Program-made: the position numbers and the translations under genes
Shown here: in pieces, positions 2,152-40,200 of the stretch
Numbering within the stretch: position 1 is the stretch's first letter
Layout: every line of letters starts with the position of its first letter
Notes under the pieces: generated by a model
Database searches by the model: none
The model's input: the letters and a program-made list of their open reading frames with translations, nothing else
Told to the model about the DNA's origin: nothing
Source: Macrostomum hystrix
Taxonomy: Eukaryota; Animalia; Platyhelminthes
Direction: 5' to 3'
Length of the DNA stretch: 64,000 nucleotides
Assembly (NCBI GenBank): GCA_950097015.1
Contig: CATNEN010000040.1
Span: 285,452-349,451, forward strand

Positions 2152-3815
2152 CTAGCGATTATAATCAATGCCGAGCAGGTGCAGATCCTGGATTGACCTT
2201 CGTGCAACTCGGTGCAGGGCTTCGGCCACCGCATAGTCCCTCAGGTAGCGCCACTCTCTGTGTGACTGCGGCAGCTGATCTAGAGCTGTCAGCGAATGGC
2301 CGTAGATCTCCCTGATGCGCTTCAGACTGCCAGCTGACAGGTAGCGGCTGGACAGGTGAAGCAGCAGGTGCGCGTAGCACAATGCGGACAACAGCTCCGA
2401 CTTGATGTCTGCCAATATGCGCCTCAGACTGAAAGCGAAACAGTTTCTTTTGAAATGAATATTTTCGGTTTCGGGGTGATATGGAACAGGATATTGGATG
2501 AAAATGAGCGGAATTTCGGGTGATGAAATAGTGAGATTTTTAAGTGGAGAAGAAGTGGGCATATTGGGCGGAAGATAATGGGGACATTGCGTGGAAGTTT
2601 ATGGGATATTGGGCGGAAGATTATGGGATATTGGGTAGGAGATAATGGGAATATTGGGCAGAAGATTATGGGATATTGGGCGGAAGATTATGGGGATATT
2701 GGGCGGAAGATTATGGGGATATTGGGCGGAAGATTATGGGGATATTGTGCAGAAGACAATGGGATATTAGGCGGAAGAAAATTGGATACATGGTGGAAAG
2801 GAAAAGAAGTAATGAGTTGAGAAAACAAATTATGAGCAATTAAATAGTGTACGAGCACATGATTGGTATGGCACGGGAAGGAATTTGCGCTCACTGGGAG
2901 GTGGCTGATCCCTGCCGCTCGTTCTCCTCCAGTTCCTCAGCAACCAAGCAGGCCACGGCCAGTCTGTTGAACAGCTGCACGAATCGGTCATTGCTGTTCG
3001 CCATTGCAATTGTGAGCTCAAACGACGTCGTAGCGGCTGGCAGGGTCTTGCTCCTCAGCCGGCTGGTGAACACACGGTCCTGGTAGCTGGTCATCCAGAG
3101 CATCGCTTGAGTCAGGTGCTTCTTGACTAGGCCAATGCCTCTGGCTAGCGAGCCTGCATGTTAGGGTAGGTGACCATTGTGCCGCTTGTTTGAGCTTAGA
3201 ATTCGGTGGGAGAGGAGAGAACAAGAGGAATGACAAATGCCACCCTACCAGGAATCCCGACATGCCGACATCTCACCTTGCGGGGAATCCCGACACGCCG
3301 ACATCTCACCTATTGGGAACCCAGACACGCCGACATCTCACCTATTGGGAACCCAGACACGCCGACATCTCACCTATTGGGAACCCAGACACGCCGACAT
3401 CTCACCTATTGGGAACCCAGACACGCCGACATCTCACCTATTGGGAACCCAGACACGCCGACATCTCACCTATTGGGAACCCAGACACGCCGACATCTCA
3501 CCTATTGGGAACCCAGACACGCCGACATCTCACCTATTGGGAACCCAGACACGCCGACATCTCACCTATTGGGAACCCAGACACGCCGACATCTCACCTA
3601 TTGGGAACCCAGACACGCCGACATCTCACCTACCTACCTTTCGGGAGAATCCCGAAACGCCGAAATATGATTTTGAGCCGCGTACCTGATTGCTGAGCAT
3701 CAGTCAGGTGGACTTGGAAGCAGACATTCACAACAGACACAGGACGGCCAAGCACCGGGTAGCACAGGGCTAACAACAGAACAGGCGCCAGGATTGTTGA
3801 CACTCGGGTTGCCAT
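2152..3815 (-). CDS. Secreted helical protein A (221 aa), putative long-chain four-helix-bundle cytokine-like; exons 3686-3815, 2895-3153, 2152-2428
   Basis: Signal-peptide-like N-terminus (MATRVSTILAPVLLLALCYPVLG). Two GT-AG introns with matching phases (1, then 2) give a stop-free 666-nt CDS. Four amphipathic helical segments are separated by long-short-long linkers. Paralogous to the gene at 4767-5776. Confidence 0.8.
2575..2780. repeat. Intronic minisatellite, ~22-23-bp unit (gggatattgggcggaagattatg)
   Basis: Tandem copies visible in intron 2 of protein A. Confidence 0.9.
3255..3632. repeat. Intronic minisatellite, 32-bp unit (tgggaacccagacacgccgacatctcacctat)
   Basis: About 10 near-perfect tandem copies in intron 1 of protein A; explains the spurious + strand ORFs at 3190-3696. 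Confidence 0.95.
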
Positions 3816-4512
3816 GACAATTCTCGGGAAAACAAATCAAATATTTCGATATAGGAGCACAGCTGAAGTCCAGAGCGCGGATGCAGTTTTTATCGTGTTG
3901 CAGTCTCACTGAGTCCCGTGATAGATTTGGAAATTCCATGATAACACCGACCGCAGGAAACAGGAACTGGCACAGAAGAAAGTAAGAGTGCTTTGGAAAT
4001 CCCAAGGATATTGTTGAAGTTGGTTTAAAATAGGCAACAACTTTCTGTGCAAAAAATAATTGAAATGCCGCACAGGAAAGCTTTGTGCGCCGAAACGAAT
4101 TTCTCATTCCCGCCTGCTCTGCGCGCGCACAAGTCCTGGATAGAAAGGTGAATGAACTTTTCTGCTCCGATGTTTCCAAGAAATAGTTGCCTTTCTAGCT
4201 CGCATGCGAGTGCGCGCGTGGGCGGGCGCATGAGCGAACAGGCGGCCTAAAAATAGACCAAATTCATTGGCTTTGCTTGAGTTCCTATTTTACGCTGCAG
4301 AATGAACGAAAATGAAAATGAATGAAAGAATGTGTATTTCAAATCACAAGTACATGTGCAGGCAAAATTATGCATTAATACTCGTACATATATAAATATA
4401 AATCATTAATTAATTAGGCGCCTTATCAATGCTTTACATTTCATTAATGCCTCATTTAGACCTTATAGCATTACTGTAATATGAATCATGTAAACTGATC
4501 TGTGTGTAAAAT

Positions 4513-4660
4513 TGAACACACACTGAAGGATGGGGAATGGCTGAACACACACTGAAGGATGGGGAATGGCTGAACACACACTGAAGGATGGGGAATGGCT
4601 GAGCACACACTGAAGGATGGGGAATGGCTGAACACACACTGAAGGATGGGGAATGGCTGA
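4513..4660. repeat. Minisatellite, 29-bp unit (aacacacactgaaggatggggaatggctg)
   Basis: About 5 copies; related to the array at 6560-7085. Confidence 0.9.
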
Positions 4661-4766
4661 ATAACCGAATACGAAATGATGCTCTGAAGTTGCAATCACA
4701 GTTTTACAAGTTAAATTATATGGAAAATGCACACTGATCACAGCTTGTGGACTATTGTGAGTGAGT

Positions 4767-5776
4767 TCAGTTGTCTCTGTGCAGTCTTAAGTCTGCGGCA
4801 ATGTTCGCGGCCAACTGTTGAGCGGCCTTCAGCAGGCTCTCGAGCACAGCGAATGCTCGCACGAATCCGAGCTCTCGCTCGCTGTGTGGCACCGGCGACG
4901 GCAGGTCTGGCAGCGGGTTGGCCGATGCAGGCGACCCAGCCCTGTCCACGCCAAGCCAGTAGCGGATGTACTCCAGAGCTGTGTACAGCTCCTTCCGGAT
5001 AAGCTCAAGCTCGTTTTTCCAGCTGTATGAAAAAGGCAAAGTAATGTTTTGTTAAATCTCACAGAGATCTCGGTAGAATCTCACTGGAATCTCACTGGAT
5101 CACTGGAATCTCACTAGAATCTCACTAGAATCTCACTAGAATCTCACTAGAATCTCACTAGAATCTCACTAGAATCTCACTGGAATCACACTCGAATCTC
5201 ACTGGAATCTCACTAGAATCTCACTAGAATCACACTGGAATCGCACTAGAATCTCACTGGAATCGCACTAGAATCTCACTAGAATCTCATTAGAATCTTA
5301 CTGGAATCACACTCGAATCTCACTGGAATCTCACTAGAATCTCAACTAGAATCACACTGGAATCGCACTAGAATCTCACTGGAATCGCACTAGAATCTCA
5401 CTAGAATCTCATTAGAATCTCACTAGAATATGAGAACTCACCTGGCGTCGTGCTCCTGACTTTCCATCTTGGGCAGCAGCTGAAGCAACCGGTCCAGATC
5501 CTCTGCGGCGCTGTCGCCGTTTCTCAGCGATTCCGCTAGGTCTCTGAGAGCAGCTGGCATCTCCTTGTTCATCAGTCGTTGACTTTTCAGCCTGGCCAGG
5601 AAGGCTCGAGTTTTGTTGACTCCCGAATCCAGGTGCTTTCTCGCCAGACCCATGGCTCTCAGGGCCGTTGAGGACTGCCGCGCGGCCTGTGGAGCTGGGG
5701 CGGCCTGAACTCCAACTTGTCGGGGCTGAAAGAGAAGAAGCGGCAGCAGCAGCAGCAGCAGCAGCAGCGGTGGCAT
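4767..5776 (-). CDS. Secreted helical protein B (196 aa), paralog of A; exons 5442-5776 and 4767-5022
   Basis: Leu-rich signal peptide ([25 protein letters not shown]). Phase-2 intron AG|gtgagt...tacag|C gives ...HDAS-WKNELELIRKELYTALEY.... Shares GLxxKHL, IxxELxxALxY and helix-D-like motifs with protein A. TATAAAT on the minus strand at 5896-5902. Confidence 0.8.
5085..5430. repeat. Intronic minisatellite, ~10-bp unit (gaatctcact[a/g])
   Basis: Fills most of the single intron of protein B. Confidence 0.9.
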
Positions 5777-6559
5777 TGAAGCCAGTCGATGAAAACCTCT
5801 GTACCAGAGAAGCATTCTATATTCTTACAGCCTTTATTGTTTAGTTTAGAATCGGTTATTAGTTCTGTTTTAAAAGGGAAGGAGGAATCGCTGCAATTTA
5901 TAGCCCAGCTTGTCAGCGATGACAGCGGGACTCCCTCGCCAGGCATTGGAATTACCAACTTCTGCTTGGCGATAAGTCCGCAATGCGACATCGGAATTCC
6001 CGAGGCTCTCCGCAAATGTCAGGTGCAGTGCTCACTGCCTGCTCTAAAATATCACCTATTGAGCAGCACTGATATGACAGCTAAGTTGCTGAGTGAGATA
6101 AATAGCCTGGCGCGCAGTCGAAGGCTGAAAAAGAAAGCGAGAGTGGACTGGACTAATCGGAAATTCCTATTGGATTTTCTGGCCCAGGGCTAACGGACAT
6201 TGGTTAGGGGGAACCGCTGTGAGGCCGACAGTTCCTGGAAATTTGGCTCTCGCTTTTTCTTGTGATTTCTATTCAGATTCGAGTGCATTGCGTGAGAAAC
6301 TAAACTTCAATATAATTATTAGCGTAACAATGAAATTTTGTCAAGCGAAAAATATTAAGTTCCACTCGTTCGACAATATTATATACGATATACAATATTG
6401 TATTGAAACATTGAAACTAAATACGAGAATACATATTATTAATTCATTAAAATTCTGTTTTAAGTCAAAAATGAAAAAAAAACTTTACATTTCTTTTAGC
6501 TTGAAAAAAACTGAATTCAAAATTAGTTTTGTGATTCATTTTGTCACAATAATATGATC

Positions 6560-8628: not shown

Positions 8629-9732
8629 TTAGTAGACGCCCTGCTTTAATTCCACGACGCTAATCCCGTCAAATTTAGACCCGGCCTGCACAAGGGTTCG
8701 TCCGACATCTGTGTCTAGCCAATCAGGTGCCAGCTCACGCAGGGTCGCAGCCAATCGGCGCCCAGTGACGTCATCAGGCATTACAGCGTGCAGCCAATCG
8801 TAGCGCGCCGGCCCGGATAGAATCAGAACACTGCGCGGCGGCATCGGAATGCGGATGTGAGCGGAGCCGGCTGATTGGCTGCCCGGACTGAGGGTCAGAT
8901 AGGTGGGGCTGCACAGGTTCAATGTGACAAGCCGTTCGCCCCACAACCAGGTGTCGTCAATGTGGGGATCAATGTGGGCGCCCATCTCGGCTCGGTAGTC
9001 CAAATTGCACAGCTCCACGGGGCGGAAGTCGGCCAGCCCGGGCAGGCGCAGCAGGCGGGGCAGAATGCCGGACCAGTAGGACGGCAGGCCAGTGAAACTA
9101 GCCGGGTTTACGCGGCGCTTCTTGAAGTTCACCTTCGGCCCGTAGTCCTGGCATGGTGCGGGCGTTTTAAGGGCGGGATAATCCCTCATCTGCTTGCCTT
9201 GACTCCACCTGAATCTCTCTCGACTCCCCCTGAATCTCTCTCGACTCCCCCTGAATGTCTCTCGACTCCACCTGAATCTCTCTCGACTCCCCCTGAATCT
9301 CTCTCGACTCCCTCTGAGTCTCTCTCGACCCCCCTGAGTCTCTCCCACCCACCAGAAAGCTACCTGCTTTCTCCGACCCGATTGAGACGGCGCCCAGGGC
9401 CGGCGATCGATTTCTGCCGCCAGTGCCGCCTCTTCCTCGGGACTGAGAAAATTCGGGAACACTCGAATGCCTTCGAGTCCCAGCACCTCGGCCTGACCCT
9501 CGCAGTGGCCGCTTTCGTGATCCGGCGTCGCCCGGATCGCCTGACAGTCGATGCAAAAGTGCAGAATTGGCAGCGCCTGGCGTGACTCAGTCTCACAGCT
9601 GGGCTGAGCAACCAGCGGCAGCTGTTTGGCAGCACAGCAGAGTCGGCAGGCGCGGATGCCCTTGCAGCCGCAGCCGATGCCGCAGCCGACGTCGACTGAT
9701 GAGGACGAGGAGACAGCTGGGCAGGCTGCCAT
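8629..9732 (-). CDS. ALKBH4: Alpha-ketoglutarate-dependent dioxygenase ALKBH4 (295 aa); exons 9364-9732 and 8629-9147
   Basis: CGCKGIRxCxxC N-terminal motif; SQSGRRKQ|DYGPKVNF; IDPHIDDTWLWGERLVTLNL; RYDWLHAV; RLAATLREL. Phase-0, 216-nt GT-AG intron. Confidence 0.93.
   Translation of the reverse strand: MAACPAVSSSSSVDVGCGIGCGCKGIRACRLCCAAKQLPLVAQPSCETESRQALPILHFCIDCQAIRATPDHESGHCEGQAEVLGLEGIRVFPNFLSPEEEAALAAEIDRRPWAPSQSGRRKQVAFWWVGETQGGRERLRGSRERFRGSRERFRWSRETFRGSRERFRGSRERFRWSQGKQMRDYPALKTPAPCQDYGPKVNFKKRRVNPASFTGLPSYWSGILPRLLRLPGLADFRPVELCNLDYRAEMGAHIDPHIDDTWLWGERLVTLNLCSPTYLTLSPGSQSAGSAHIRIPMPPRSVLILSGPARYDWLHAVMPDDVTGRRLAATLRELAPDWLDTDVGRTLVQAGSKFDGISVVELKQGVY
9195..9345. repeat. Intronic minisatellite, 21-bp unit (cccctgaatctctctcgactc)
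   Basis: About 6 copies inside the ALKBH4 intron. Confidence 0.85.
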
Positions 9733-9744
9733 GTGAGTTGAAGG

Positions 9745-11872
9745 AATAGAATGGATTGCTAATCTATCCCATGGGTGAGGGAATATAATGGATTGCTAAT
9801 CTATCCCATTGGTGAAGAAATATAATGGATTGCTAATCTATCCCATGGGTGAGGGAATAGAATGTATTGCTAATCTATCCCATGGGTGAAGAAAAAGAAT
9901 GGATTGCTAATCTATCCCATGGGTGAAAGAATAGAATGGATTGCTAATCTATCCCATGGGTGAAGGAATGGAATGGATTGCTAATCTATCCCATGGGTGA
10001 AGGAATAGAATGGATTGCTAATCTATCCCATGGGTGAGGGAATAGAATGGATTGCTAATCTATCCCATGGGTGAGGGAATAGTGTGGATTGCTAATCTAT
10101 CCCATGGGTGAGGGAATAGTGTGGATTGCTAATCTATCCCATGGGTGAAGGAATAGAATGGATTGCTAATCTATCCCATGGGTGAAGGAATAGAATGGAT
10201 TGCTAGTCTATCCCATGGGTGAGGGAATAGAATGGATTGCTAATCTATCCCATGGGTGAGGGAATAGAATGGATTGCTAATCTATCCCATGGGTGAAGGA
10301 ATAGAATGGAAAGCTAATCTATCCCATGGGTGAGGGAATAGAATGGATTGCTAGTCTATCCCATGGGTGAGGGAATAGAATGGATTGCTAATCTATCCCA
10401 TGGGTGAGGGAATAGAATGGATTGCTAATCTATCCCATGGGTGAGGGAATAGTGTGGATTGCTAATCTATCCCATGGGTGAGGGAATAGAATGGATTGCT
10501 AATCTATCCCATGGGTGAGGGAATAGAATGGATTGCTAATCTATCCCATGGGTGAAGGAATAGAATGGATTGCTAATCTATCCCATGGGTGAGGGAATAG
10601 AATGGATTGCTAATCTATCCCATGGGTGAGGGAATAGAATGGATTGCTAATCTATCCCATGGGTGAAGGAATAGAATGGAAAGCTAATCTATCCCATGGG
10701 TGAGGGAATAGAATGGATTGCTAGTCTATCCCATGGTCGAGGGAATAGAATGGATTGCTAATCTATCCAATGGGTGAGGGAATAGAATGGATTGCTAATC
10801 TATCCCATGGGTGAAGAAATAGAATGGATTGCTAATCTATCCCATGGGTGGAGGAATAGAATGGAAAGCTAATCTATCCCATGGGTGAGGGAATAGAATG
10901 GATTGCTAATCTATCCCATGGGTGAGGGAATAGAATGGATTGCTAATCTATCCCATGGGTGAGGGAATAGAATGGATTGCTAATCTATCCCATGGGTGAG
11001 GGAATAGAATGGATTGCTAATCTATCCCATGGGTGAAGGAATATAATGGATTGCTAATCTATCCCATAGGTGGAGGAATAGAATGGAAAGCTAATCTATC
11101 CCATGGGTGAGGGAATAGAATGGATTGCTAATCTATCCCATGGGTGAGGGAATAGAATGGATTGCTAATCTATCCCATGGGTGAAGGAATAGAATGGATT
11201 GCTAATCTATCCCATGGGTGGAGGAATAGAATGGAAAGCTAATCTATCCCATGGGTAAGGGAATAGAATGGATTGCTAATCTATCCCATGGGTGAGGGAA
11301 TAGAATGGATTGCTAATCTATCCCATGGGTGAGGGAATAGAATGGATTGCTAGTCTATCCCATGGGTGAGGGAATAGAATGGATTGCTAGTCTATCCCAT
11401 GGGTGAGGGAATAGAATGGATTGCTAATCTATCCCATGGGTGAGGGAATAGTGTGGATTGCTAATCTATCCCATGGGTGAGGGAATAGAATGGATTGCTA
11501 ATCTATCCCATGGGTGAGGGAATAGAATGGATTGCTAATCTATCCCATGGGTGAAGGAATAGAATGGATTGCTAATCTATCCCATGGGTGAAGGAATAGA
11601 ATGGATTGCTAGTCTATCCCATGGGTGAGGGAATAGAATGGATTGCTAATCTATCCCATGGGTGAGGGAATAGAATGGATTGCTAATCTATCCCATGGGT
11701 GAAGGAATAGAATGGAAAGCTAATCTATCCCATGGGTGAAGGAATAGAATGGATTGCTAATCTATCCCATGGGTGAAGGAATAGAATGGATTGCTAATCT
11801 ATCCCATGGGTGAGGGAATAGAATGGAAAAGCTAATCTATCCCATGGGTGAGGGAATAGTGTGGATTGCTAA
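9745..11872. repeat. Large minisatellite, 37-bp unit (ggaatagaatggattgctaatctatcccatgggtgag)
   Basis: More than 50 tandem copies, starting about 12 nt upstream of the ALKBH4 ATG. Confidence 0.97.
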
Positions 11873-11975
11873 AATAGCCTACACAGTGAAGGAATAAAAT
11901 TGATCGATTGTGACAAATTAAATAGTGAAAAACTATTACCTAGCAGAGAAGCAGGGTCAAAGACTTGTGCCCCTG

Positions 11976-12337
11976 TCATTTGTCAGTCTTTTGATGTTGT
12001 TGCTGCTGTTTAGCGTACTGAAAAGAATTCAGATGCCGTATTGTCTAAAATCAATCTGAATAACAGTTTATCGATTCGGAATCTAGATGAATGTTATGCC
12101 TACACAAACTAGCGAGCCTATACAAACCTTGTTCACTACCCAGTCAGCATCGAGCAGAGCCCGATCGATAATCTGGCGGATCCTATCCGGATCGGTCTCG
12201 TCGGAGTGACTGTTGTAGGCCTGGCGAATATAATTAGAATAGTAGGGCCTGGCGTTGCTGGGCAGGGTGCGCACCAGTCTGAGCAAGTGCCTGTACAGCT
12301 GCAGCGGAGTGCGGATAGTGCGGAGGCCAACGCCTGC
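11976..12337 (-). CDS. LYRM9: LYR-motif protein 9; exons 12128-12337 and 11976-12017; no ATG at the 5' end
   Basis: PLQLYRHLLRLVR...YIRQAYNSHSDETDPDRIRQIIDRALLDADWVVNK|YAKQ...* closely follows LYRM9. The frame starts at acceptor ttttag|GCA, whose TAG is an in-frame stop. Confidence 0.88.
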
Positions 12338-12434
12338 CTAAAACAGAATGCAAGCAAACACATGCTAATATTTCTACTTATAGTAGTGTGTTCATAAAAT
12401 GACATTTTTCAGTTTTTCTAGCTCAAGTTTAAGT

Positions 12435-13990: not shown

Positions 13991-14216
13991 TCAACTATTG
14001 CCATATTAATTAATTAAAATTTTGCAATACTAAATGACAAAATTGCAAGACTTTTATGAAGGCATAATTATTTTGGTCATCGAGCACTACTAAAAGTAGT
14101 TTCTATCTGAATAATATGTACAGACTTTTTGGCCTGGCAAAAAGACAAATCAGAGGATTGACATGCTTTTTGAAGTCAAACACTATATTCCTAAATGATT
14201 GTATTGATTCGTGCTA

Positions 14217-15097
14217 TCAGGATGACTGCAAAGCCCATGTCCTGGTCACCAGATCCAGCTCCATCTTCAGCAATTGATTCTGCTCTCGCTGACTCTCCAG
14301 AGCATTGCGCAACTTGGCCGCGTCACTGCCATTCTCCTCGGCATCACTGTCACAGCCGGTCGACGCTGCTTCAAGCTGAGCTATGCGCCGCTTAGCCGCC
14401 TCCAGCTGCGCCTCGGCCCGGTCCAGCCGACTGTCCGAATCGTCGCAGCGTCGGAGGGCGCCGTCTAGCTGGCGACGCAATTCGTCCAATTGGCGAGCTG
14501 TTTGAGCTGCGAGCCAATCCGAGTCGCACAGCTTGCGCTCAGCTGACCGGCGCTGTTCCTGCAGCGAATGCCAGTTTTGTTAGTTTTTTTCAGTTTTCAA
14601 GCTTCGAGCTTTCAAGTATTCGCTGGCTAAGTGACCAGGGCACGGATTCGAACTCATGACCCTTGGTGGGAGAGTGGAACCTCAGAACGTAATAAAACAT
14701 ACTAATAGTACTGTAAGATTTATTTCGGCGCAGACTGTAGAATCTAAGCTACAGATATTGTATTCACCACAGTATTAAAATTATTCCTAACCTGTTCCAT
14801 GTGAAGCAGCTGCATCACCTGCTGCATCTCAGCTTTGAGTTCCTCTTCCTGAACCAAAAACAGCTCCTGTTGTTCTACTACTGGTAGAGAGGGCATGCCC
14901 TCCTCGGCGGAAAAGTACAGCCGCAGCGGCTGCAGCCTCGACCTGGTCCTGCAAGCCGGACAGATGGACTGGCCGCCGCAGCTGCGCAGCCAGTCGCCAA
15001 CGCAGCCAGAGTGAAACACGTGGCCGCAGTTGGGCAGGGCGGAGCAGTCGCTCTCGCCGTCCAGCTGAGCGCGACAGATCGGACAGTTTATTTGAGC
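14217..15097 (-). CDS. TRAIP: RING E3 ligase with coiled coil, TRAIP/NOPO-like; exons 14792-15097 and 14217-14558; no ATG at the 5' end
   Basis: N-terminal C3H2C3 RING (CPIC...CGHVFHSGCV...CPAC) followed by LRLYFS and a coiled coil; phase-0 intron; frame starts at ccgcag|GCT CAA ATA AAC TGT with an in-frame TAG just upstream. Orthology is not certain. Confidence 0.7.
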
Positions 15098-15660: not shown

Positions 15661-16622
15661 TGGGATTAAGATATCTCGCAAAACTGGTTGCTTCAACGAA
15701 TTTTAGAAAGCTTAGTTTATGAGTAATCGATCTTCATTTTATCCTTTATTTATCACGAAGCACAATAGCCTGTCAATAGCTATCTCGTGACTAACTCAAT
15801 TTTACAGTCAAAATCAAAGTTTTCTAATCAAGTATAAGTGTATTACGAGAACTATGTAGAATGGCTTCACTAACAAATCAGTAGACCAAGCTGTAGCCTA
15901 AATCGGTTGGTTGGTTGGTGATTGGTTGCTATTGTGATTCATGATAAATAAACGAAAAATTAAGAAAAATTATTCATGAATAAAGCTTTCTGAAATTCGT
16001 TAGAAAGTTTCTATTCCTATCTAGTGCGTTATTCCGGGAAAATCTGCATTTAATAAATTTTTCCAAGAAACGAAAACGAATTCTTGCAGCCAAGTGGTTA
16101 GAGCTTTATAATTATTGTCAGCACAAGGTAAAAGTTTGAGCAAGACACTTAATTCCACTAGTACTCGTACTTCAGCTCGCCCAGCTGTAGAATACGATAA
16201 TCCCCATGTCCATGGACTGAACAGCCATGTCATTCATTTCTATCTTTAGTTTTGAATACCGCTCCTTCATGTAATGAAGTCCAATTGAGAAATGAGAAAA
16301 GAGCAGGTCTGTCAGAGCAGCAAACATGAGTCCAGTCAGTCGCACTTAATGCTGTTTATTTATTCCTTGTCAGTTATTTAGTTAGTTAAATGATCATACA
16401 TAACGAAATGCCAAAAAATTTACACATTCCTGCGGCTAAAAGTAGTAATGGTTTGTAATGGTTTCAAGCATTCAAGCATGGTTTAGCAGGAACTTATCTT
16501 AAAACGATGTTAGATAACATTGGACAGTGATTTTATTTAGCAAATTACAATACCTTCCAAAGAGTTGACGAAATCATGAAACAACAAGCAGAAGACAAAG
16601 AGAAATGCAGCAAAATGCTGGC

Positions 16623-19600
16623 TTAACGGCTCGCTTTCTTCCCCTTCCCCCTTGTCTTTGGCTTCCCGCCAGAGTCGGCGCTGCCGCTGCCGCAGCCACC
16701 TATGGCTCGGAACCAGTTCCTCTGCTGCTGCTGCTGATGCTGAGCATTGCGACTCCCACTACCGGCCACTTCCAGTCGTTTCTGAACTCGATTCAACGAC
16801 TGCTCAGCGGCCCTCTGGGCGGACTCCAGCCGCTCCTCCTGCAGCACGGCTGACACGTCCGGCTCCAGGGCGGCGATGCGGTCGCGGTAACTGGCGATGA
16901 CCGATTTGGGCACAATGCGCAGCTTCACAGGGATTGGCGCCTTGCGCACAATCTGCTTCAGCAGCGGCCGCTCCGCCTCTCCGGCCAGGCTGATGGCCAG
17001 GCCCTGCTTGCCGGCGCGGGCTGTGCGGCCCACCCGGTGAGTGTACACCTGCCAGGTGGGGTTTGGCTCAAATCTTAAATGGGAAACACGCGATAACTCC
17101 TAAAAACTCATAAATACCAACGGAAAACACACAGGAAAATCCGCAACGAAAAGCAACCTAAAATCCCAATGAAAAAATCACAATCCTGAATGGAAAAGAC
17201 GCCACAATACTAATAGAAACCATGCTAATGAAATCATCCTGATGAAAACCATGCTAAAATCCCAAATGGAAAACACGCTAAAATCCTGATGAAAACCATG
17301 CTAAAATCCCAAATGGAAAACACGCTAAAATCCTGATGAAAACCATGCTAAAATCCCAAATGGAAAACACGCTAAAATCCTGATGAAAACCATGCTAAAA
17401 TCCCAAATGGAAAACACGCTAAAATCCCAAATGGAAAACACGCTAAAATCCCAAATGGAAAACACGCTAAAATCCCAAATGGAAACCAGCTAAAATCACA
17501 ATGGAAAACACGCTAAAATCCCAAATGGAAACCAGCTAAAATCCCAATGGAAAACACGCTAAAATCCCAAATGGAAACCAGCTAAAATCACAATGGAAAA
17601 CACGCTAAAATCCCAAATGGAAAACACGCTAAAATCCCAATGGAAAACACGCTAAAATCCCAAATGGAAAACACGCTAAAATCCCAAATGGAAACCAGCT
17701 AAAATCACAATGGAAAACACGCTAAAATCCCAAATGGAAAACACGCTAAAATCCCAAATGGAAACCAGCTAAAATCCCAATGGAAAACACGCTAAAATCC
17801 CAAATGGAAAACACGCTAAAATCCTGATGAAAACCATGCTAAAATCCCAAATGGAAAACACGCTAAAATCCCAATGGAAACCAGCTAAAATCCCAATGGA
17901 AATCATGCTAAAATCCTGAAGAAAACCATGCTAAAATCCCAAATGGAAAACACGCTAAAATCCCAAATGGAAACCAGCTAAAATCCCAATGGAAACCAGC
18001 TAAAATCCCAATGGAAACCAGCTAAAATCCCAATGGAAAACACGCTAAAATCCCAATAGAAATCATGCTAAAATCCTGAAGAAAACCATGCTAAAATCCC
18101 AATGGAAAACACGCTAAAATCCCAATAGAAATCATGCTAAAATCCTGAAGAAAACCATGCTAAAATCCCAAATGGAAAACACGCTAAAATCCCAAATGGA
18201 AACCAGCTAAAATCCCAATGGAAAACACGCTAAAATCCCAAATGGAAAACACGCTAAAATACTAAATGGAAACCAGCTAAAATCCCAAATGGAAAACACG
18301 CTAAAATCCCAATAGAAATCATGCTAAAATCCTGATGAAAACCATGCTAAAATCCCAAATGGAAAACACGCTAAAATCCCAAATGGAAAACACGCTAAAA
18401 TCCCAAATGGAAAACACGCTAAAATACTAAATGGAAACCAGCTAAAATCCCAAATGGAAAACACGCTAAAATCCCAATAGAAATCATGCTAAAATCCTGA
18501 TGAAAACCATGCTAAAATCCCAAATGGAAAACACGCTAAAATCCCAAATGGAAAACACGCTAAAATCCCAAATGGAAAACACGCTAAAATCCCAAATGGA
18601 AAACAAGCTAAAATCCTAAATGGAAAACACGCTAAAATCCCAATGGAAAACACCATAAGGCGGGAAGCACACTAAAACGCAATGAGGTACACCTAAGCAG
18701 TAACCAAATGGTCGCCAGAAGTAATGTGTGCACTAGTCAGCAAATGACCTTGAGCGAATCCGGCAGGCTGTAGTTAATGACGGTGCGCACACCCTCGATA
18801 TCCAGGCCTCTGGAGACCAGATCCGTGGCCAGCAACACGCCAACCTCGGCCTTATGGAATCTGTCCAGGGCCTCCAATCGTTGGACCTGACTCAGGGAGC
18901 TGTGCAGCTCGGCGCAGGACACGCCCAGCAGGCCCAGCAGGACGTGCATTCGGTGGCACAGCCGGCGGGTGGGGCAGAACACAATGCAGCGCTCGTTGAA
19001 GCTGCGCTGAACCAGTGCGGCAACAACGGCCTCCCGATCTGACTCGCGCTGCTGCCGGATGCGGACAAACTCCTGCTGCAGGCGGAGGGTGACGTCGGCC
19101 CGGTCGCTTAGGAACAGCTTCACCGGATTGCGCAGTGCCATGGCGGACAGCTCGCGAACATCGTCTGTCATAGTGGCGCTGAATAGCAGCACCTGGCCGG
19201 AAATGGGTAATGAGTATGGGTTAAGGGTAATGAGCATTGGATAGGGGTAATGAGCAACGGAGAAGGGTAATGAGCAACGGAGAAGGGTAATGAGCAACGG
19301 AGAAGGGTAATGAGCATCGGAGAAGTGTAATGAGCATTAGGGAAGGGTAGTGAGCAACGAAGAAGGGTTATGAGCATTGGATAGGGGTAATGAGCATTGG
19401 ATAGGGGTAATGAGCATCGGAGAGGGTAATGAGCATCGGAGAGGGTAATGAGCATCGGAGAGGGTAATGAGCATCGGAGAGGTAATGAGCATCGGAGAGG
19501 GTAATGAGCATCGGAGAGGGTTATGAGCATCAGAGAGGGTTATGAGCATCAGAGAGGGTTATGAGCATCAGAGAGGGTTATGAGCAGTTGGTACAAAGAC

Positions 19601-25770: not shown

Positions 25771-27606
25771 TCACATTGCTGAAGCGTCGATGGAGACAAA
25801 CTCGATCGACCTGCCCGAAGCGCTGATCAGAAGCAGCAAGTCGCGGTTCCCCATCCGCACTAAAGTCGACGCTCTCGACACTGGACTCTTCAATTCGAGA
25901 GCCTGGAGCACCTGGCTGCTACTTCTCAATGCAACAATTCGCTTGCCCTCGACTAGAACTGCTCCGCCGTTCCCAGCACTGAACAGTGCCACACCTGGAT
26001 CCACGGCAGTCCGACGGCGCCGACCCAGCAGCTTAGTGAGCTGCGGCAGCTCCGAGACCAAGCGACTGTCGACGTCTACTCTGGACAGCGTGCCATCACC
26101 TGGATCAACCAGAATGAAGTTCGGGCAGACTGAGAACACTGACGTGAATGAAGAGGCCGAGAGGGCAACACTGCGAATCTGCTGCAGATTTTTAGAATCG
26201 TAAACAGAAACGTAGGAAACATCATAGAGCGAGTGATACACCATAATCTGATCCGACTGGTGGCTGTAGTTCCACAGTTTGGAGTTTTCAATTTCAACTG
26301 ATTTTAACGACTGGCCACACGCACTCGCAGTAAAAAGTCCATAATGATGCGCAACAATGAAACCTAGCGAACATCCGAAAATAGCATGGAAGTTATCTAC
26401 ATTCCTAAAAGGGAAGGGAAAACAAATACGGACTACTGCACCAAAAATTAGCTGGCATTCTGGAAAACTAAATAGCTGAAACTCGCGAGATGAGCGATTC
26501 GACTGGAACTGCACAAATATAATGGACTTTGGAAGCTTTACACTCTCTTTGTCATGCTGAGTTGCGAAAACTCTTAATTTCGAATCCATCCACAGACTAA
26601 CATCTGACAAGCAGACAGCGTGCACTGGGACTCCAGAAAACACAACAGGCTTAGCATCCATAACCAGCAAGGGGGTCTCAGGCGAAAGTGTTCGATTAAG
26701 AATAGGCTCTAAAATGTCGCACATCTTCTCAAAATCGTCTTGAAGAACCTCAACGCTGCACTCAGCAGCTGACTTCACCTCATCAGAGACTGTTGCGAGT
26801 GACGCATCCAGGTGCTCCAGCTGCCGCAGAGCTCTCCTCGTCTCCTCAACCAGCTGCACAGCACTGCGACCATTCTCAGACTCAGACGCGTCAGAATCAA
26901 AGCTCGACTGAAACTGCTCAAGCTTCGCTCGCACCGACTCGAAACTCTCAATGCAGCTCGAGCATCTCTCAATGTCAATCCGAACTGCCTTCGTTGCCAA
27001 CGTCTCTGCGTCCTCAAGCAGCTCTCTCAGCCCATCAAACTTGGACTCCACCACTTGCAGTGTGGCCTCAACACTCTGCTTTTTGTTTGCTGCCTCTGCA
27101 AGACCTGCTGCTAAACGGCTTGCTGGCGACAGTGCATCAGCGACTGGCTCTCTCAGTGAGGCGATCTCTGCGGACAGCTTGTCCTGCTCCACCCTGAGAT
27201 GCTGCTTGCACATGGCTTGGTTGGAGTAAACGGACACATCCTTCCACTGATTCTGACATCCCTGGGATGAGCACAGCTGTAGTGACGGTTCAGCACCTTT
27301 ATCTTTCACAGACTTGTTCGAGAGCTTGGATGCAATTTTTACGGTTCTTGTAAACTGCAGCTTGGTAGCATCGCGCTTCAACTTCAAGGATTCCGAGGGA
27401 AGCTGAAGTGACACCTGGCACACACGGCAACTCCCAGAGCACCAGTCGCTGGCATTTCTGATTGAGTCTACACAGGTGAGACAGACAGAGTGAGAGCAAG
27501 GCAGCAGTCTAGGATCAGACACCATTTGCTGGCACACTGAGCAGGTGAGCAGCTCCTCCACGGATGGCACGGAATCGCCATCTTCTTCTGACAAAGCGGT
27601 TGCCAT
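25771..27606 (-). CDS. Intronless RING/TRIM-like protein 1 (611 aa): RING, degenerate B-box-like segment, coiled coil, beta-rich C-terminus
   Basis: CSVC...LPCSHSVCLTC...CRVC RING; long intact ORF; paralog at 29727-31598. Confidence 0.85.
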   Translation of the reverse strand: MATALSEEDGDSVPSVEELLTCSVCQQMVSDPRLLPCSHSVCLTCVDSIRNASDWCSGSCRVCQVSLQLPSESLKLKRDATKLQFTRTVKIASKLSNKSVKDKGAEPSLQLCSSQGCQNQWKDVSVYSNQAMCKQHLRVEQDKLSAEIASLREPVADALSPASRLAAGLAEAANKKQSVEATLQVVESKFDGLRELLEDAETLATKAVRIDIERCSSCIESFESVRAKLEQFQSSFDSDASESENGRSAVQLVEETRRALRQLEHLDASLATVSDEVKSAAECSVEVLQDDFEKMCDILEPILNRTLSPETPLLVMDAKPVVFSGVPVHAVCLSDVSLWMDSKLRVFATQHDKESVKLPKSIIFVQFQSNRSSREFQLFSFPECQLIFGAVVRICFPFPFRNVDNFHAIFGCSLGFIVAHHYGLFTASACGQSLKSVEIENSKLWNYSHQSDQIMVYHSLYDVSYVSVYDSKNLQQIRSVALSASSFTSVFSVCPNFILVDPGDGTLSRVDVDSRLVSELPQLTKLLGRRRRTAVDPGVALFSAGNGGAVLVEGKRIVALRSSSQVLQALELKSPVSRASTLVRMGNRDLLLLISASGRSIEFVSIDASAM

Positions 27607-29726: not shown

Positions 29727-31598
29727 CTACTTCTGAGAATTAATGGACAGCAGCTCGATTGATTTGTTTGACGTGCTGTATACCAAAATGTACTCTTTGT
29801 TCTCGATGCAAACTTTAGTGAAGGAATCTAGCAATACAGCGCGACGCAGTTTTACAATTTCCAGAACATCACCTTGACTATTGAATGTAAAAATATGCGA
29901 GCCTTCAATTAGTATGTAGGCGTTGCCACCAGCATCGGATAGCATTTGAAATCTAGAAAAAAAATGATTGAATTCTTTTAACTGCGCAAGTTTTGTGACA
30001 GCGCGAATATTGGGATCAATCAAACTGACTTCTTTATCGCCCAAATCAGCTAATATGTATCGAGTGCTAATGGCAAATATAGCAGAGCAAGCCAAGGCGG
30101 ACAACGGCAAAAATCTTGTCAGTTGAAGATCATTGGTGTAGATGAAAATACCATTGCCTCGCGAATATGTGACCAGCTGTTCTGAGGCTGAACAAAACGA
30201 ACACAAATTCGACGGTTTGGTCTTGACAAACTTAACAAATTCACCACTGGCAGAAATGATCCACAGGCACGCACTATGCGCAACGATAAAATAGCAGCGA
30301 GAAGAAACACCAAAAAAACCTTTTATAACATATGGTCTACAATTAATTACCATAATATTAGAGGCGTGTGGGCCCTTCTCAACCGGAAACTGTATCTTGT
30401 ACATCGCACCAAAGATTACATCGCAATAAGGAAACGAAAAAAACTGCATTTCAGCATCAGCGGTGTCGCCATTTTGAAACATAAAGACAAGAATCGAATC
30501 CGAAATCTTTACTGACATTGGAGGCACTTTACCATCTGATGGCACGGGGACAGCACGTGAATTACTATCCAACATAAGGTTCGTATTAGTTAAACAAGTC
30601 ACAAATTTCGGTTCAATCAAATGAACTACAGGCCTTGTATCAACAACCGATAGCACGGAGAGACAAGAAACTGTTTTGTCGACCAGGACCTCCATTTTAC
30701 TTCCCAGTCTCTCCAACTCAGTCCGAAAGACGTCGGTACTTTTCTCAGCAGCTGACTTCACCTCATCAGAGACTGTTGCGAATGACGTATCCAGGTGCTC
30801 CAGCTGCCACAGAGCTCTCCTCGTCTCCTCAACCAGCTGCACAGCACTGCGACCATTCTCAGACTCAGACGCGTCAGACTCAAATCTCGACTGAAACTGC
30901 TCAAGCTTCGCTCGCACCGACTCGAAGCTCTCAATGCAGCTCGAGCATCTCTCAATGTCAATCCGAACTGCCTTCGTTGCCAACGTCTCTGCGTCCTCAA
31001 GCAGCTCTCTCAGCCCACCAAACTTGGACTCCACCTCTTGCAGTGTGGCCTCAACACTCTGCTTTTTGTTCGCTGCCTCTACAAGACCTGCTGCTAAACG
31101 GCTTGCTGGCGACAGTGCATCAGCGACTGGCTCTCTCAGTGAGGCGATCTCTGCGGACAGCTTGTCCTGCTCCACCCTGAGATGCTGCTCGCACATGGCT
31201 TGGTTGGAGTAAACGGACACATCCTTCCACTGATTCTGACATCCCTGGGATGAGCACAGCTGTAGTGACGGTACAGCACCTCTATCTTCCTCAGAGTCGT
31301 TTGATTTAAACAGCTTGGATGCAATTTTTACGGTTCTGGCTAACTGCAGTTTGGAAACATCTCGCTTGAGTTGAGAAGAGTCCGCTGGTAATTGCAGTTT
31401 TTGCAGACAAACACGGCAACTGCCTGAGCACTGGTCACTGGCATCTCTGAGTGAGTCCACGCATGTGAGGCAAACCGAGTGCCAGCATGGAAGGAACCTA
31501 GGATCGGATACCATGTGTTGGCACACGGAGCAGGTGAGCAGCTGCTCCACTGAGGGAACGTCCTCGTCTGAACCTGTGTCTTCTGAGGCGGCTGCCAT
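29727..31598 (-). CDS. Intronless RING/TRIM-like protein 2 (623 aa)
   Basis: CSVC...LPCWHSVCLTC...CRVC RING; central block almost identical to paralog 1; acceptor tttcag 4 nt before the ATG. Confidence 0.85.
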   Translation of the reverse strand: MAAASEDTGSDEDVPSVEQLLTCSVCQHMVSDPRFLPCWHSVCLTCVDSLRDASDQCSGSCRVCLQKLQLPADSSQLKRDVSKLQLARTVKIASKLFKSNDSEEDRGAVPSLQLCSSQGCQNQWKDVSVYSNQAMCEQHLRVEQDKLSAEIASLREPVADALSPASRLAAGLVEAANKKQSVEATLQEVESKFGGLRELLEDAETLATKAVRIDIERCSSCIESFESVRAKLEQFQSRFESDASESENGRSAVQLVEETRRALWQLEHLDTSFATVSDEVKSAAEKSTDVFRTELERLGSKMEVLVDKTVSCLSVLSVVDTRPVVHLIEPKFVTCLTNTNLMLDSNSRAVPVPSDGKVPPMSVKISDSILVFMFQNGDTADAEMQFFSFPYCDVIFGAMYKIQFPVEKGPHASNIMVINCRPYVIKGFFGVSSRCYFIVAHSACLWIISASGEFVKFVKTKPSNLCSFCSASEQLVTYSRGNGIFIYTNDLQLTRFLPLSALACSAIFAISTRYILADLGDKEVSLIDPNIRAVTKLAQLKEFNHFFSRFQMLSDAGGNAYILIEGSHIFTFNSQGDVLEIVKLRRAVLLDSFTKVCIENKEYILVYSTSNKSIELLSINSQK

Positions 31599-37239: not shown

Positions 37240-40200
37240 TCACGCCTGGTCCAAGTCGATTCGCCGTTTCAGCACAGCCAGTGCCTCCTCTGGCGTCAGC
37301 GAGGCCACGCCCTGGTCCAGCAGCATCCGCAGCGGATCCTCGCCGTCGCGCGGCGGTCCGGCCAGCGCCTGGCGCAGCAGCGCCGCCGTACCCCGAGCCA
37401 GGCCAAGCAGGCAGCAGGCCTGGGCGCTCTCGGCCAATAGGCGATCTGGCCGGCCGCAGTACTGGGCAAATACCGGCATGAACACCTGCAGTGATTATTT
37501 ATAAGGACTTGCTCAATGCTTTAAGAATCATTTGTACACTGAAAGATACATGTAGATGTATACATGCTGTGACATTCTGTCTAAGACAGATGTAAGTTAT
37601 CTGAGGCTACTGAGAGCCAGAGTGCAGAAATCTGCCCGCGCGCGGTGCGCACATTGTCTATTTATAGCCATTGGCCAAAACGGGGTGGTACAAATATATT
37701 ACGTAGGAAAGCCTCACACCCTCCACCAAAAGTTCGAAAATCGCTCCAAATCAAACGGCATGAAAACACACAGACCAAAATTTAACTGTACGCTAGAAAA
37801 AAACACTTCAAACAATTAACCAACATGAGCGAATTGAAAGTCATTGTCACTGTTTGTCATTCAAGATCAATCACTTGGTCGGACTCCAAAGCCGACTCAG
37901 GCCATCCGCGGCGCCGTTGCTCTCGCCCGGCTGGTACTGGATCGCATAGTCGAAGCCCGACAGGTAGTGGGCCCATCGCTGCAGCCGCGGGTTGGCGTGG
38001 TCCAGTTGCAGGTACTGCAGCGGCTTGTGGTCCGACCGGATGATGAAGTGGCGCCCAAGCAGATAGTGCCGCAGTTTCTCGACCGCCCAGCGCACGGCGA
38101 GGCACTCCTTCTCGATGGTCGCGTAACCTTGCTCCGCCGCCGTCAGCCGCCGAGACACGAAGAGCACCGGGTGAATGCCGTCCTCAAACTCCTGCGTCAG
38201 CACCGCTCCGAGGCCGGTCTCCGAGCTGTCCGTCTCCAGGATGAAAGGCCGGCCGTAGTCCGGGGCGCGCAGCACCGGCTCGCTTGTCATCAGTGCCTTG
38301 GCCACCTCGAATGCTCGCGTGTGCTTCTCGCCCCAGGCCGCCGTCAGGTCCTCGGGCGTCGTTCTCCTGGTGAGCTCCGTCAGTGCCGCCACCTGGTCCG
38401 CGTAGTTCGGGATGAACCGGCGATAGTGGTTGAGCACGCCGAGCACCGATCGCAGCTGAGTCTTGGTTCGGGGTTGCTCAAGCGCCTTGATTGCCCGTAC
38501 TCGGTCCTCGCTGGTGCTGATCTCGTCGTTTCCCAGCTTAAATCCGAGGTAGTCCGTCGAGGTGCCGCCTAGAAAGCATTTGCGTGGCTGGACAGTTAGC
38601 CCAGCTGCTTTCAGCCGATTGAAAACTCGCCGTAGATCTTGCAGGTGCTGCTCGAACGTCTCGCTAAACACGGCGATGTCGTCGATGTAGGACTCCGCAC
38701 TGTCGATTCCGAGAAGCACCTTGTCCATCAGCCTCTGGTAGGTGGCGCTACTGCAGTTCAGTCCCATAGGCAGCACAGTGAACTGATACAGCTTGCCATT
38801 GGCCGCGAATGCTGTCAGCCGCTTGGAGTTTTCGGCCAGCGGGATCTGCCAGTAGCCCTTGCAGCAGTCGAGCTTGGATATGAACTTAGCCTTCGCGACG
38901 CTCTCCAGCAGGTCCTCGATGTTCTTCATCGGGTAGGAGTCGAAAGCCACCAGCTCATTGAGCGCCTTGAAGTTGACGGTGAACCGAACTGAGCCGTCCT
39001 TCTTGGCTACCAGACACACCGGGGAGCAGTAGTCGCTGTCGGACGGTTCGATGACACCCAGGTCCAGCATACGCTGAACCTCGTCCTGCAGAACTTGCCG
39101 GTATGCCTGCGGCTCCCGCCGCGGCCGGATGCGCACCACCTGGTTAGACGTTGTTCGAATTCGATGCTCCATCAGGCTCGTCCTGCCGGGGGTCTCGCTG
39201 AAGACATCTTTGAAGTCGCAAACCAGACTGTCTAGGAGCCGCTTCTGCCCGAAGTTCAGAGTGTCGGCCAGCTCCGGCAGGCCTGACTTCCTTTGTGCTG
39301 AGTCGATCTGGTCTGCCTTCCGAGTCGTTGCCAACAAGATTGACTCTCGCGAGTTATACTTCTTCAGCAGGTTGATGTGAAACACATTCGTATTCTTGCC
39401 GATTCTAATCCGATAGTTCACGTCGTTGCACTTCTCCAGGACCTCAAGGGGCCTCGCCATTCAGCATGCAGCTTCGTGGATGACGACGGCAGCAGCAGCA
39501 GCACTTGATCACCCGGCGCCAGCTCCCTCTCGCGAGACCTCCGGTCATACCAGTGCTTCCACCGCTTTCTTTCCAGCTCCTCGTTACTTCTTGACGCCTC
39601 CAGCCCTGCCTGCAGCCGGTCTCGTTGGGCCAGGACAAAGGTGATGATGTCCTTCTTCTCCGCGGTCAGCTTCTCGTCCCACGTCTGTCGCAGCAGATCC
39701 AGGGGTCCTCGGACAGTCCGGCCGTAGAGCAGTTCGAATGGTGAAAACCCAGTAGTCTCATTCGGAACCTCCCTGATAGCAAATAACAGGTATGGCAGGT
39801 AGAGGTCCCACTTCTTTTTTTCGCGGGCTGGTAGCCTTCGGAGCATAGTCTTGAGTGTGCCGTGAAATCGTTCCACAAGCGCCTGGCTTTGCGGGTGGTA
39901 CGGCGTTGACTGAATGCCTTCAACTCCAGTGCATTGGTACAAGGCCTGCAGCAACGCTGACGAGAAGTTCGTGCCCTTGTCGCTTTGGATCTCCTTTGGG
40001 AAGCCAGTTCTTGAGAAGCAGTCGATCAGCGCCTTGGCCACCGTTTCGGCGTCGATATTCCGCAGCGGAAAGCCCTCCGGGAACCGGGTCGCTGCATCGA
40101 TCACGGATAAAATGTACTTGTGGCCGCTTGAGGACTTCGGATACGGTCCGCTGATGTCAATGATCACCTTGCTGAAGGCTTCTTCTACTCCTGGTACTTG

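Follow-up and report, generated by a model that had tools for sequence, protein, structure and literature searches.

Two adjacent unannotated genes, A and B, were found on the minus strand of the window, by which we mean the whole 64-kb stretch of Macrostomum DNA analysed here. Comparison with Macrostomum lignano shows, at the level of sequence, that both are real protein-coding genes, and they define a conserved, previously unannotated family of putative secreted proteins in Macrostomum, a model for regeneration and sexual selection. As for the function of these proteins, the most likely mechanism, which we propose tentatively, is that A and B act as secreted, soluble, ligand-like binding proteins. 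Specifically, helices A and D would form a surface that binds a specific partner, as suggested by clusters of invariant polar residues in six sequences from two species. Gene A would represent the conserved, slowly evolving member of the pair, and gene B a paralogue that diverges rapidly, as happens among secreted proteins of immunity, reproduction or other settings of conflict. We favour this mechanism because the invariant polar clusters fit a partner-binding bundle, and not a generic amphipathic or lipid-coating protein.

Gene models and paralogy of A and B

As read from the sequence, both genes have open frames after splicing, and all of their introns are of the GT-AG type (Table 1). The initial annotation had reconstructed two secreted proteins of 221 and 196 residues by splicing, and this reconstruction was borne out by the splice sites, the open frames and, by eye, the signal-peptide-like N-termini; all three helix motifs that it quoted are likewise found in genes A and B. 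The coding sequence of gene A amounts to 666 nt (221 aa) and that of gene B, counted from ATG 5776, to 591 nt (196 aa), with the gene B donor site after 5442 (CAG/GTGAGT) and the acceptor before 5022 (ATACAG/C). The putative signal peptide of gene A has about 23 residues (MATR and a hydrophobic core, ending in VLG/RP), and that of gene B features a poly-Leu core ending in VQA/AP. Gene B may have an earlier start, as ATG 5815 is in frame with it and is the first ATG 3′ of the CTATAAAT box. Starting there would add 13 residues, placing R/H/R ahead of the poly-Leu core, and the protein might then have 209 rather than 196 residues; the M. lignano gene B likewise begins with ML and has GCTATAAAA about 100 nt 5′ of its ATG. 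In DNA run X2, exon 2 of gene B carries two polymorphisms, one synonymous and one L>F, which are uninformative. The introns and the 3′ flank of gene B are rich in minisatellites, and it is to minisatellites that matches with a second organism's contigs, obtained in a sequencing-run search that listed three runs, all of DNA, were confined.

Table 1. Features of genes A and B and their surroundings, in window coordinates
Feature	Position	Strand	Description
Gene A exon 1	3686..3815	-	ATG 3815, signal peptide and beginning of the mature chain; ends in phase 1
Gene A intron 1	3154..3685	-	GT-AG; nearly filled by a 32-bp minisatellite (3251-3632, 11.9 copies)
Gene A exon 2	2895..3153	-	Helix A (invariant KHL), RLxxK(T)LPA motif, helix B; ends in phase 2
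Gene A intron 2	2429..2894	-	Phase 2, counterpart in gene B; contains a 23-bp minisatellite (2556-2798)
Gene A exon 3	2152..2428	-	Helix C (IKSELLSALCY), C-D segment, helix D (PQSHREWRYLRDYAV...); stop 2154-2152
Gene B exon 1	5442..5776	-	Signal peptide, helix A, mini-helix, helix B; ends in phase 2
Gene B intron	5023..5441	-	Phase 2, GT-AG; filled by an 11-bp minisatellite (5055-5429, 34 copies)
Gene B exon 2	4767..5022	-	Helix C (IRKELYTALEY), Pro-rich disordered C-D loop, helix D (PHSERELGFVRAFAV...); stop 4769-4767
29-bp minisatellite	4513..4661	.	Immediately 3′ of gene B, in the 3′ UTR or intergenic
Possible gene B N-terminal extension	5777..5815	-	13 codons (MLLWYRGFHRLAS); ORF 5438-5815
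TATA-like box	5896..5903	-	CTATAAAT, ~80 nt 5′ of ATG 5815; identified by eye

The proteins encoded by A and B are collinear, with an overall identity of 27–29%. BLASTP aligned their N-terminal halves with an E value of 2e-7 and their C-terminal halves with 8e-5, and when the entire window was searched in six frames each gene was the best non-self match of the other. A codon located 8 residues ahead of the I in IKSELL (A) and IRKELY (B) is also split in both by a phase-2 intron, exactly as the initial annotation had it. These observations argue that A and B are paralogues despite their low identity, their similarity being beyond chance. The N- and C-terminal halves gave an hhalign probability of 0.4% when compared with each other, indicating no internal repeat.

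Conservation and asymmetric evolution in Macrostomum

The pair is also present, unannotated, in M. lignano, in a block that occurs there three times and has the order ALKBH4, B, A, TIR gene. Two M. lignano loci of the pair lie on NIVC01000257.1 (around 511.5-516.6 kb) and NIVC01000390.1 (around 584.9-590.8 kb). In two of these copies (L002 and L003) both genes are intact, and the positions and phases of their introns are the same as in the window. For gene A, the orthologue of exon 1 (17045-17180 in L002, 17673-17808 in L003) is in the same phase, exon 2 is about 53% identical to L002 18015-18266, and exon 3 reaches 63–64% identity over 83 residues, being the sole exon of either gene detectable at the DNA level as well (74%). 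The orthologues of gene B exons 1 and 2 lie at 14204-14517 and 15346-15571 in L002. Within A and B, the exons alone are conserved between the two species, which, together with splice sites whose position and phase are the same in M. lignano, supports splicing at the predicted junctions. Moreover, a whole set of features is common to the window and the L002 and L003 genes: the signal peptide, KHL in helix A, the RLxxK motif, the phase-2 intron placed 8 residues ahead of the I of helix C, the P..xRE opening of helix D and a location flanked by ALKBH4 and the TIR gene. The comparison thus shows that the tandem duplication giving rise to A and B predates the split of the window's species from M. 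lignano. In the NCBI annotation of M. lignano, the interval separating ALKBH4 from the TIR gene is devoid of genes in all three block copies, including those with intact genes, and searches for A and B in libraries holding M. lignano UniRef proteins came back empty. Their absence from both the annotation and the protein libraries may reflect low or conditional expression.

Further properties were derived from a family alignment of six sequences from the two species, which gave invariant residues, pI, cysteines and N-glycosylation sites. The precursors have 179–234 residues and the mature proteins 159–211 (18–23 kDa, pI 9.0–9.7). Signal-peptide-like N-termini, judged by eye from n/h/c regions and the −3/−1 rule, are present in six of the six sequences, and no transmembrane segment was seen in A or B. 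Gene A has three conserved cysteines and gene B has none at all, so that the fold does not require cysteines. The residues invariant in both paralogues and both species are few, mostly polar or charged, and clustered: KHL lies within helix A, RLxxK closes that helix, and P..xRE...(R)..V sits at the N-terminal end of helix D.

The two paralogues have evolved at markedly different rates. Gene A is 55% identical between species with a dN/dS of about 0.25, and gene B is 30% identical with a dN/dS of about 0.57, both ratios being rough since dS is saturated (1.0–1.3). The substitution pattern shows that gene A is under purifying selection and gene B is evolving very fast. The pair is a neat case of asymmetric evolution following tandem duplication, with a constrained A and a racing B.

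Predicted structure and database searches

AF2 was run on exon-sized halves of gene B, with 4–6 sequences, and returned models of modest confidence (pLDDT 68 and 73). In the model of residues 30-111 (mean pLDDT 68), helices span 31-70, 75-85 and 90-110; in the C-terminal half they span 114-134 and 158-195, and the pLDDT of the intervening loop 135-157 falls partly below 50. Read from the N-terminus, this corresponds to helix A (about 40 residues), a mini-helix of 11 residues with a 4-residue link on either side, helix B (21), a short link, helix C (21), a disordered loop of 23 residues and helix D (38). The mature proteins of A and B are predicted to be all-alpha, the modelled gene B halves consisting of four main helices, an extra short helix between A and B and a flexible C-D link. 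The initial annotation had proposed four helices joined by a long, a short and again a long loop. Its four main helices, short B-C link and long C-D loop are all present in the models; its long A-B loop is not, as this connection comprises just about 19 residues, half of them helical. The arms are also roughly equal in length, helix A to the mini-helix plus helix B, and helix C plus the loop to helix D. These arm lengths favour the cytokine topology no more than they do a plain up-down-up-down bundle, and the order and lengths of the helices agree with either. Foldseek searches with the two half-models returned generic helical hairpins alone, all with E>2; those found with the isolated C-D half were solely antiparallel and not one of them reached significance. 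Modelling a half in isolation also tends to give this result.

No relatives of A and B were detected in Pfam, PDB profiles, 5.8 billion clustered proteins or 1.84 billion representatives, and neither exon 1 of gene B nor exon 3 of gene A had a match in word-indexed protein searches. Neither Pfam nor the PDB profiles produced a confident match to an unrelated known family. The Pfam entries that surfaced (DUF6285, AlkA_N and Nrd1-Seb1) are sub-threshold noise, and the PDB profile matches of both halves (eL29, raptor and designed proteins) can be put down to chance. When a profile of the C-terminal half was used in an exhaustive HMM search, the lone match (P0001) was an NB-ARC/TPR protein; it is spurious, since ELxxALxY is mimicked there by a TPR motif (hhalign probability 4%). 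In the ESM Atlas, feature searches reached scores of 0.68 and 0.83, with low recognition and no usable lead. In an exact look-up none of the window's proteins was found in the protein collection, and the lack of a self-match for A and B reflects that alone.

Alternative explanations and comparison with known systems

How do other explanations compare with a secreted ligand-like binder? A and B might be glandular or reproductive secretions (prostate, seminal-fluid or other gland cargo) that evolve fast under sexual or ecological conflict, and not ligands acting within the animal. Macrostomum has many fast-evolving secreted proteins confined to reproductive tissue, and a small, secreted, lineage-restricted pair would be at home among them, the more so given the rate at which gene B diverges between congeners. 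Both genes also appear, by eye, to have TATA-like promoters of their own, usual for tissue-specific genes. However, abundant gland transcripts are normally caught by transcriptome-based annotation, from which A and B are missing in M. lignano, and gene A is clearly constrained. We regard this explanation as unlikely, though it deserves to be taken seriously.

It is improbable, in our view, that A and B are lipid-binding bundles of the exchangeable-apolipoprotein or apolipophorin-III kind, whose amphipathic helices open onto lipid or another hydrophobic cargo. That class typically consists of secreted up-down bundles of about this size in which no disulfide is essential, and ApoC-I, ApoA-II and ApoC-III clusters are among the nearest language-model neighbours of the gene B N-terminal half, at scores of 0.60–0.62 that lie far below significance. 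Yet none of nine exon pieces matched ApoLp-III or an apolipoprotein in Pfam at E<=10, the halves lack an internal repeat, and the hydrophobic moments are merely moderate. The invariant residues, too, form specific polar motifs and not a general amphipathic pattern.

The initial annotation saw in A and B candidate long-chain class-I cytokines with up-up-down-down topology, which would signal via a gp130/Domeless-like receptor to JAK/STAT. In gp130-type cytokines the receptor sites lie on helices A and D, and it is on these helices that the conserved patches of A and B appear to map. The secretion signal (seen by eye) and the mature size agree with what is expected of a cytokine (~18–25 kDa), and so do the basic, all-alpha character, the long C-D loop with the short B-C link, and the rapid divergence and BLAST failure typical of cytokines. 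On the other hand, the A-B link is short and half helical, a simple up-down bundle would agree with the arm lengths, and the resemblance of the isolated C-D half to antiparallel hairpins speaks weakly against the cytokine fold. By eye, helix D does not open with the FxxK site-III motif of the LIF/CNTF type. The exon pieces matched no Pfam cytokine family even at E<=10, and no cytokine was among the PDB profile matches, although very divergent cytokines would be expected to give the same outcome. The literature on JAK/STAT in flatworms is contradictory. One survey, itself inconsistent about JAK, detected no STAT, JAK or IL6R in Platyhelminthes (PMC13203501), whereas a planarian STAT5 acting in regeneration was described in 2026, in a paper with no planarian JAK, receptor or ligand (PMC13662587). 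On balance, we find it decidedly doubtful that A and B are such cytokines.

The weakest explanation, that A and B are non-functional chance ORFs or decaying pseudogenes, can draw on their being unannotated in M. lignano and on four 1-nt frameshifts across A and B in the third block copy (L001), but is largely refuted and very improbable: the window and two M. lignano copies have A and B in intact form, with the same splice sites and phases, exons alone are conserved where synonymous sites are saturated, and even the housekeeping gene ALKBH4 is frameshifted in L001, which points to a poorly polished or degenerate duplicate contig.

A secreted ligand-like binder thus continues to be the mechanism we favour, and what the pair would mean for flatworm biology depends on its full-length structure. 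Should the latter have the cytokine crossover topology, A and B would become testable candidate ligands of flatworm STAT signalling, in animals readily studied, since M. lignano is amenable to RNAi, in situ hybridisation and transgenesis. Were they indeed cytokines, a long shot by our estimate, they would be the first helical class-I-type cytokines in Platyhelminthes. They would then be the extracellular ligands that have been missing from the upstream end of flatworm STAT signalling, itself reported to act in planarian regeneration, hidden by being unannotated and beyond sequence detection. If that topology were lacking, they would be an ordinary, though well-supported, orphan family.

Among known systems, the gp130/IL-6-type cytokines (IL-6, IL-11, LIF, OSM and CNTF) are, like A and B, all-alpha proteins of about 20 kDa that are secreted (except CNTF), with four main helices, a long C-D connection, very fast divergence and conserved patches on helices A and D. 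Unlike them (Pfam IL6, LIF_OSM, CNTF), A and B have no profile similarity to these families, a short A-B connection and, in gene B, no cysteine; the crossover topology of these cytokines is one of two layouts that the gene B half-models would allow. Drosophila Unpaired proteins (Upd1-3) are also invertebrate, secreted, basic and predicted to be helical, have clustered paralogues and, like A and B, escape BLAST outside a narrow clade. However, they have about 400 residues, roughly twice the length of A and B, and showed no sequence similarity to them in any search. Apolipophorin-III and the exchangeable apolipoproteins are secreted amphipathic bundles of similar size in which disulfides are not needed, and an up-down connectivity would suit the arm lengths seen here; the differences lie in the missing Pfam match and half-to-half repeat, and in discrete polar motifs in place of a lipid-binding face. 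Finally, A and B have much in common with the orphan secreted-protein genes of flatworms, a descriptive class and not a family: they are small, secreted, tandem-duplicated, fast-evolving, missed by annotation and, as far as the searches reach, restricted to Macrostomum. In contrast to that class, A and B have retained the same location, order and intron arrangement from before the two species separated, and one of the two is clearly under purifying selection.

A tandem gene pair shared by two Macrostomum species

Our analysis shows that genes A and B, two neighbouring unannotated minus-strand genes of the window, form a conserved tandem pair encoding secreted, basic, all-alpha proteins, of which A is constrained and B fast-evolving. 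Both spliced products proposed in the initial annotation, 221 aa for A and 196 aa for B (591 coding nt), could be rebuilt from the window; every intron of gene A has GT-AG ends, and its phases are 1 and 2. The proposed common intron is also present: the last intron is in phase 2 in both genes, and the I of the helix C motif (IKSELL in A, IRKELY in B) follows the split codon by 8 residues. Gene B may instead encode 209 aa, since the ATG that comes first downstream of a CTATAAAT box (5903-5896) is in frame, at 5815. The suggested paralogy of A and B proved statistically sound. In BLASTP, their N-terminal halves match at E 2e-7 and their C-terminal halves at E 8e-5, collinearly in both; when the entire window was searched in six frames, the best non-self match of each protein was the other gene.

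The pair neighbours a single-exon ALKBH4-like ORF, whose top database matches are three M. lignano proteins (73-80% identity), followed by ALKBH4 from other phyla at about 50%. These values, together with an exact look-up that found none of the window's ORFs in the protein collection, indicate that the window belongs to an unannotated Macrostomum species, clearly distinct from M. lignano in sequence. Two UniProt entries of M. lignano, P0002 and P0003, carry the name 'LYR motif-containing protein 9' and combine LYR Pfam domains with a 74-80% alignment to the window's ALKBH4 ORF (window 8629-12349); either two adjacent genes were fused by annotation or the two share one transcript.

In all three M. 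lignano contigs with the ALKBH4 block (L001, L002 and L003), tblastn located both genes downstream of ALKBH4, B preceding A, ordered and oriented as they are in the window, at a location where the NCBI annotation of these contigs has no gene. In L002 the next gene is a TIR gene, matching the window. Once spliced at the homologous GT-AG sites, both ORFs are intact in L002 and L003, gene A encoding 234 aa in three exons (phases 1 and 2) and gene B 179 aa in two (phase 2), the common intron again falling 8 residues ahead of the I in helix C. The L001 copy carries four 1-nt frameshifts in the pair, one in B and three in A. These do not count against the genes, because ALKBH4 has a further frameshift there and the other two copies are intact; L001 is either a badly polished contig (end) or a degenerating duplicate from the partial genome duplication of M. 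lignano. Three DNA runs confirmed the assembly and yielded nothing further.

Conservation between the window and M. lignano is limited to the exons of A and B, the introns and intergenic DNA being unrelated, and the sole part alignable as DNA is gene A exon 3 (74%). Between the species, the A proteins share 55% identity and the B proteins only 30%; the corresponding Nei-Gojobori dN/dS values are about 0.25 and 0.57, with dS saturated at 1.0-1.3. Despite the low identity, the orthology of the two B genes is supported by synteny and by indels common to both. The duplication is therefore older than the species split. The cross-species comparison confirms and extends what was first noticed in the window.

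Positions of gene models, repeat arrays and other features (window positions unless a contig is named)
Feature	Position	Strand	Details
Gene A, start 3815	3815-3686, 3153-2895, 2428-2152	minus	666 nt, 221 aa
Gene B exon 1	ATG 5776 to 5442	minus	donor CAG/GTGAGT after 5442
Gene B exon 2	5022 onward; stop 4769-4767	minus	acceptor behind ...TTTTTCATACAG
ALKBH4-like ORF	8632-9732		single exon
Intron minisatellites	2556-2798, 3251-3632, 5055-5429		units 23, 32, 11 bp
Intron minisatellites, L002	14587-15278, 17397-17915, 18310-18828		units 20, 5, 21 bp
Minisatellite at gene A end, L002	19149-19400		14-bp unit GCTTAGCAACCCCA
Minisatellite directly downstream of gene B	4513-4661		29-bp unit
Frameshifts, L001 (NIVC01003594.1)	11968, 15840-15860, 17535-17544, 18657-18660, 19505-19508		
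RING-finger ORFs	25771-27606, 29727-31598	minus	~610-620 aa
LTR-retrotransposon-type ORFs	37871-42189	minus	two long ORFs

Minisatellites and other features of the locus

Each intron of A and B is, in both species, mostly occupied by a single minisatellite array. The two species have unrelated repeat units at identical intron positions; the arrays therefore turn over within fixed introns. In M. lignano gene A, the last ~11 codons and the stop fall within the opening units of a 14-bp minisatellite, the TAG of the unit serving as stop; the C-terminus of gene A in the window differs, being shorter and without an array. The same sequencing study covered a second organism, whose contigs match the 29-bp array and the 11-bp intron array, and none of the exons.

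Elsewhere in the window, the retrotransposon-type ORFs contain SCAN-like, aspartic protease, integrase zinc-binding and core, reverse transcriptase and RNase H domains. The two tandem RING-finger ORFs, whose RING matches are weak, look like paralogues, and in M. lignano RING genes occupy the equivalent position of L003.

Predicted structure and possible roles

The six sequences compared (A and B from the window, L002 and L003) all begin with an N-terminus that, judged by eye, resembles a signal peptide. The mature proteins have 159-211 residues, a pI of 9.0-9.7, zero or one N-glycosylation sequon and no second hydrophobic segment; three cysteines are conserved in A and none in B. AlphaFold2 was run separately on two exon-sized halves of gene B, each with a small alignment. 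In the N-terminal half (mean pLDDT 68) it predicted helix A at precursor residues 31-70 (~40 residues), a mini-helix at 75-85 (11) and helix B at 90-110 (21), joined by links of 4 residues. The C-terminal half (mean pLDDT 73), reached from helix B by a short link, was predicted to contain helix C (114-134, 21 residues), a disordered Pro-rich loop (135-157, 23 residues) and helix D (158-195, 38 residues). The exon-junction region is rich in Gly/Pro/Ser/Thr in three of the four genes, which makes a short B-C loop likely. We found no internal repeat between the N- and C-terminal halves.

The few residues invariant across the six sequences are mostly polar: KHL in helix A, RLxxK at its end and, where helix D begins, a Pro and RE, after which come conserved R, V and L. 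We tentatively favor, at somewhat short of an even chance, soluble ligand-like proteins that would form a helical bundle and bind a specific partner through this polar patch of helices A and D. Secretion by glands or the reproductive system is unlikely, and apolipoprotein-like lipid binding is improbable.

The initial annotation had suggested that A and B may be up-up-down-down helical cytokines, ligands of JAK/STAT type. The linear helix pattern of the half-models is compatible with this topology and with up-down-up-down, without discriminating between them. Up-up-down-down would need the 19-residue, half-helical A-B connection to run back along helix A, which is feasible but tight; the predicted arm lengths suit plain up-down-up-down naturally (A is about as long as mini-helix plus B, and C plus loop about as long as D). 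The isolated C-D half-model matched only antiparallel hairpins, none significantly; this argues only weakly against the cytokine topology, hairpin-like models being common for halves folded in isolation. The literature on the flatworm pathway disagrees: one survey detected neither STAT nor IL6R in Platyhelminthes and makes inconsistent statements about JAK (PMC13203501), whereas a functional STAT5 was described in the planarian Dugesia in 2026, in a study that reports no planarian JAK, receptor or ligand (PMC13662587). On this evidence, which neither supports nor contradicts the cytokine reading, we consider true cytokines quite improbable. That A and B are non-functional ORFs has a nearly negligible probability.

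Relation to known protein families

Pfam searches at E<=10 produced nothing beyond sub-threshold noise, and profile searches of the PDB only chance matches, with no cytokine among them. No relatives were found among 5.8 billion clustered proteins. When 1.84 billion representatives were searched exhaustively, the only match was a protein of NB-ARC/TPR type, rejected as a relative since its TPR motif mimics ELxxALxY. Neither Atlas feature searches nor Foldseek with the half-models led any further. Within the reach of these tools, the family is confined to Macrostomum. A and B represent a new, unannotated and lineage-restricted gene family, ordinary in kind.
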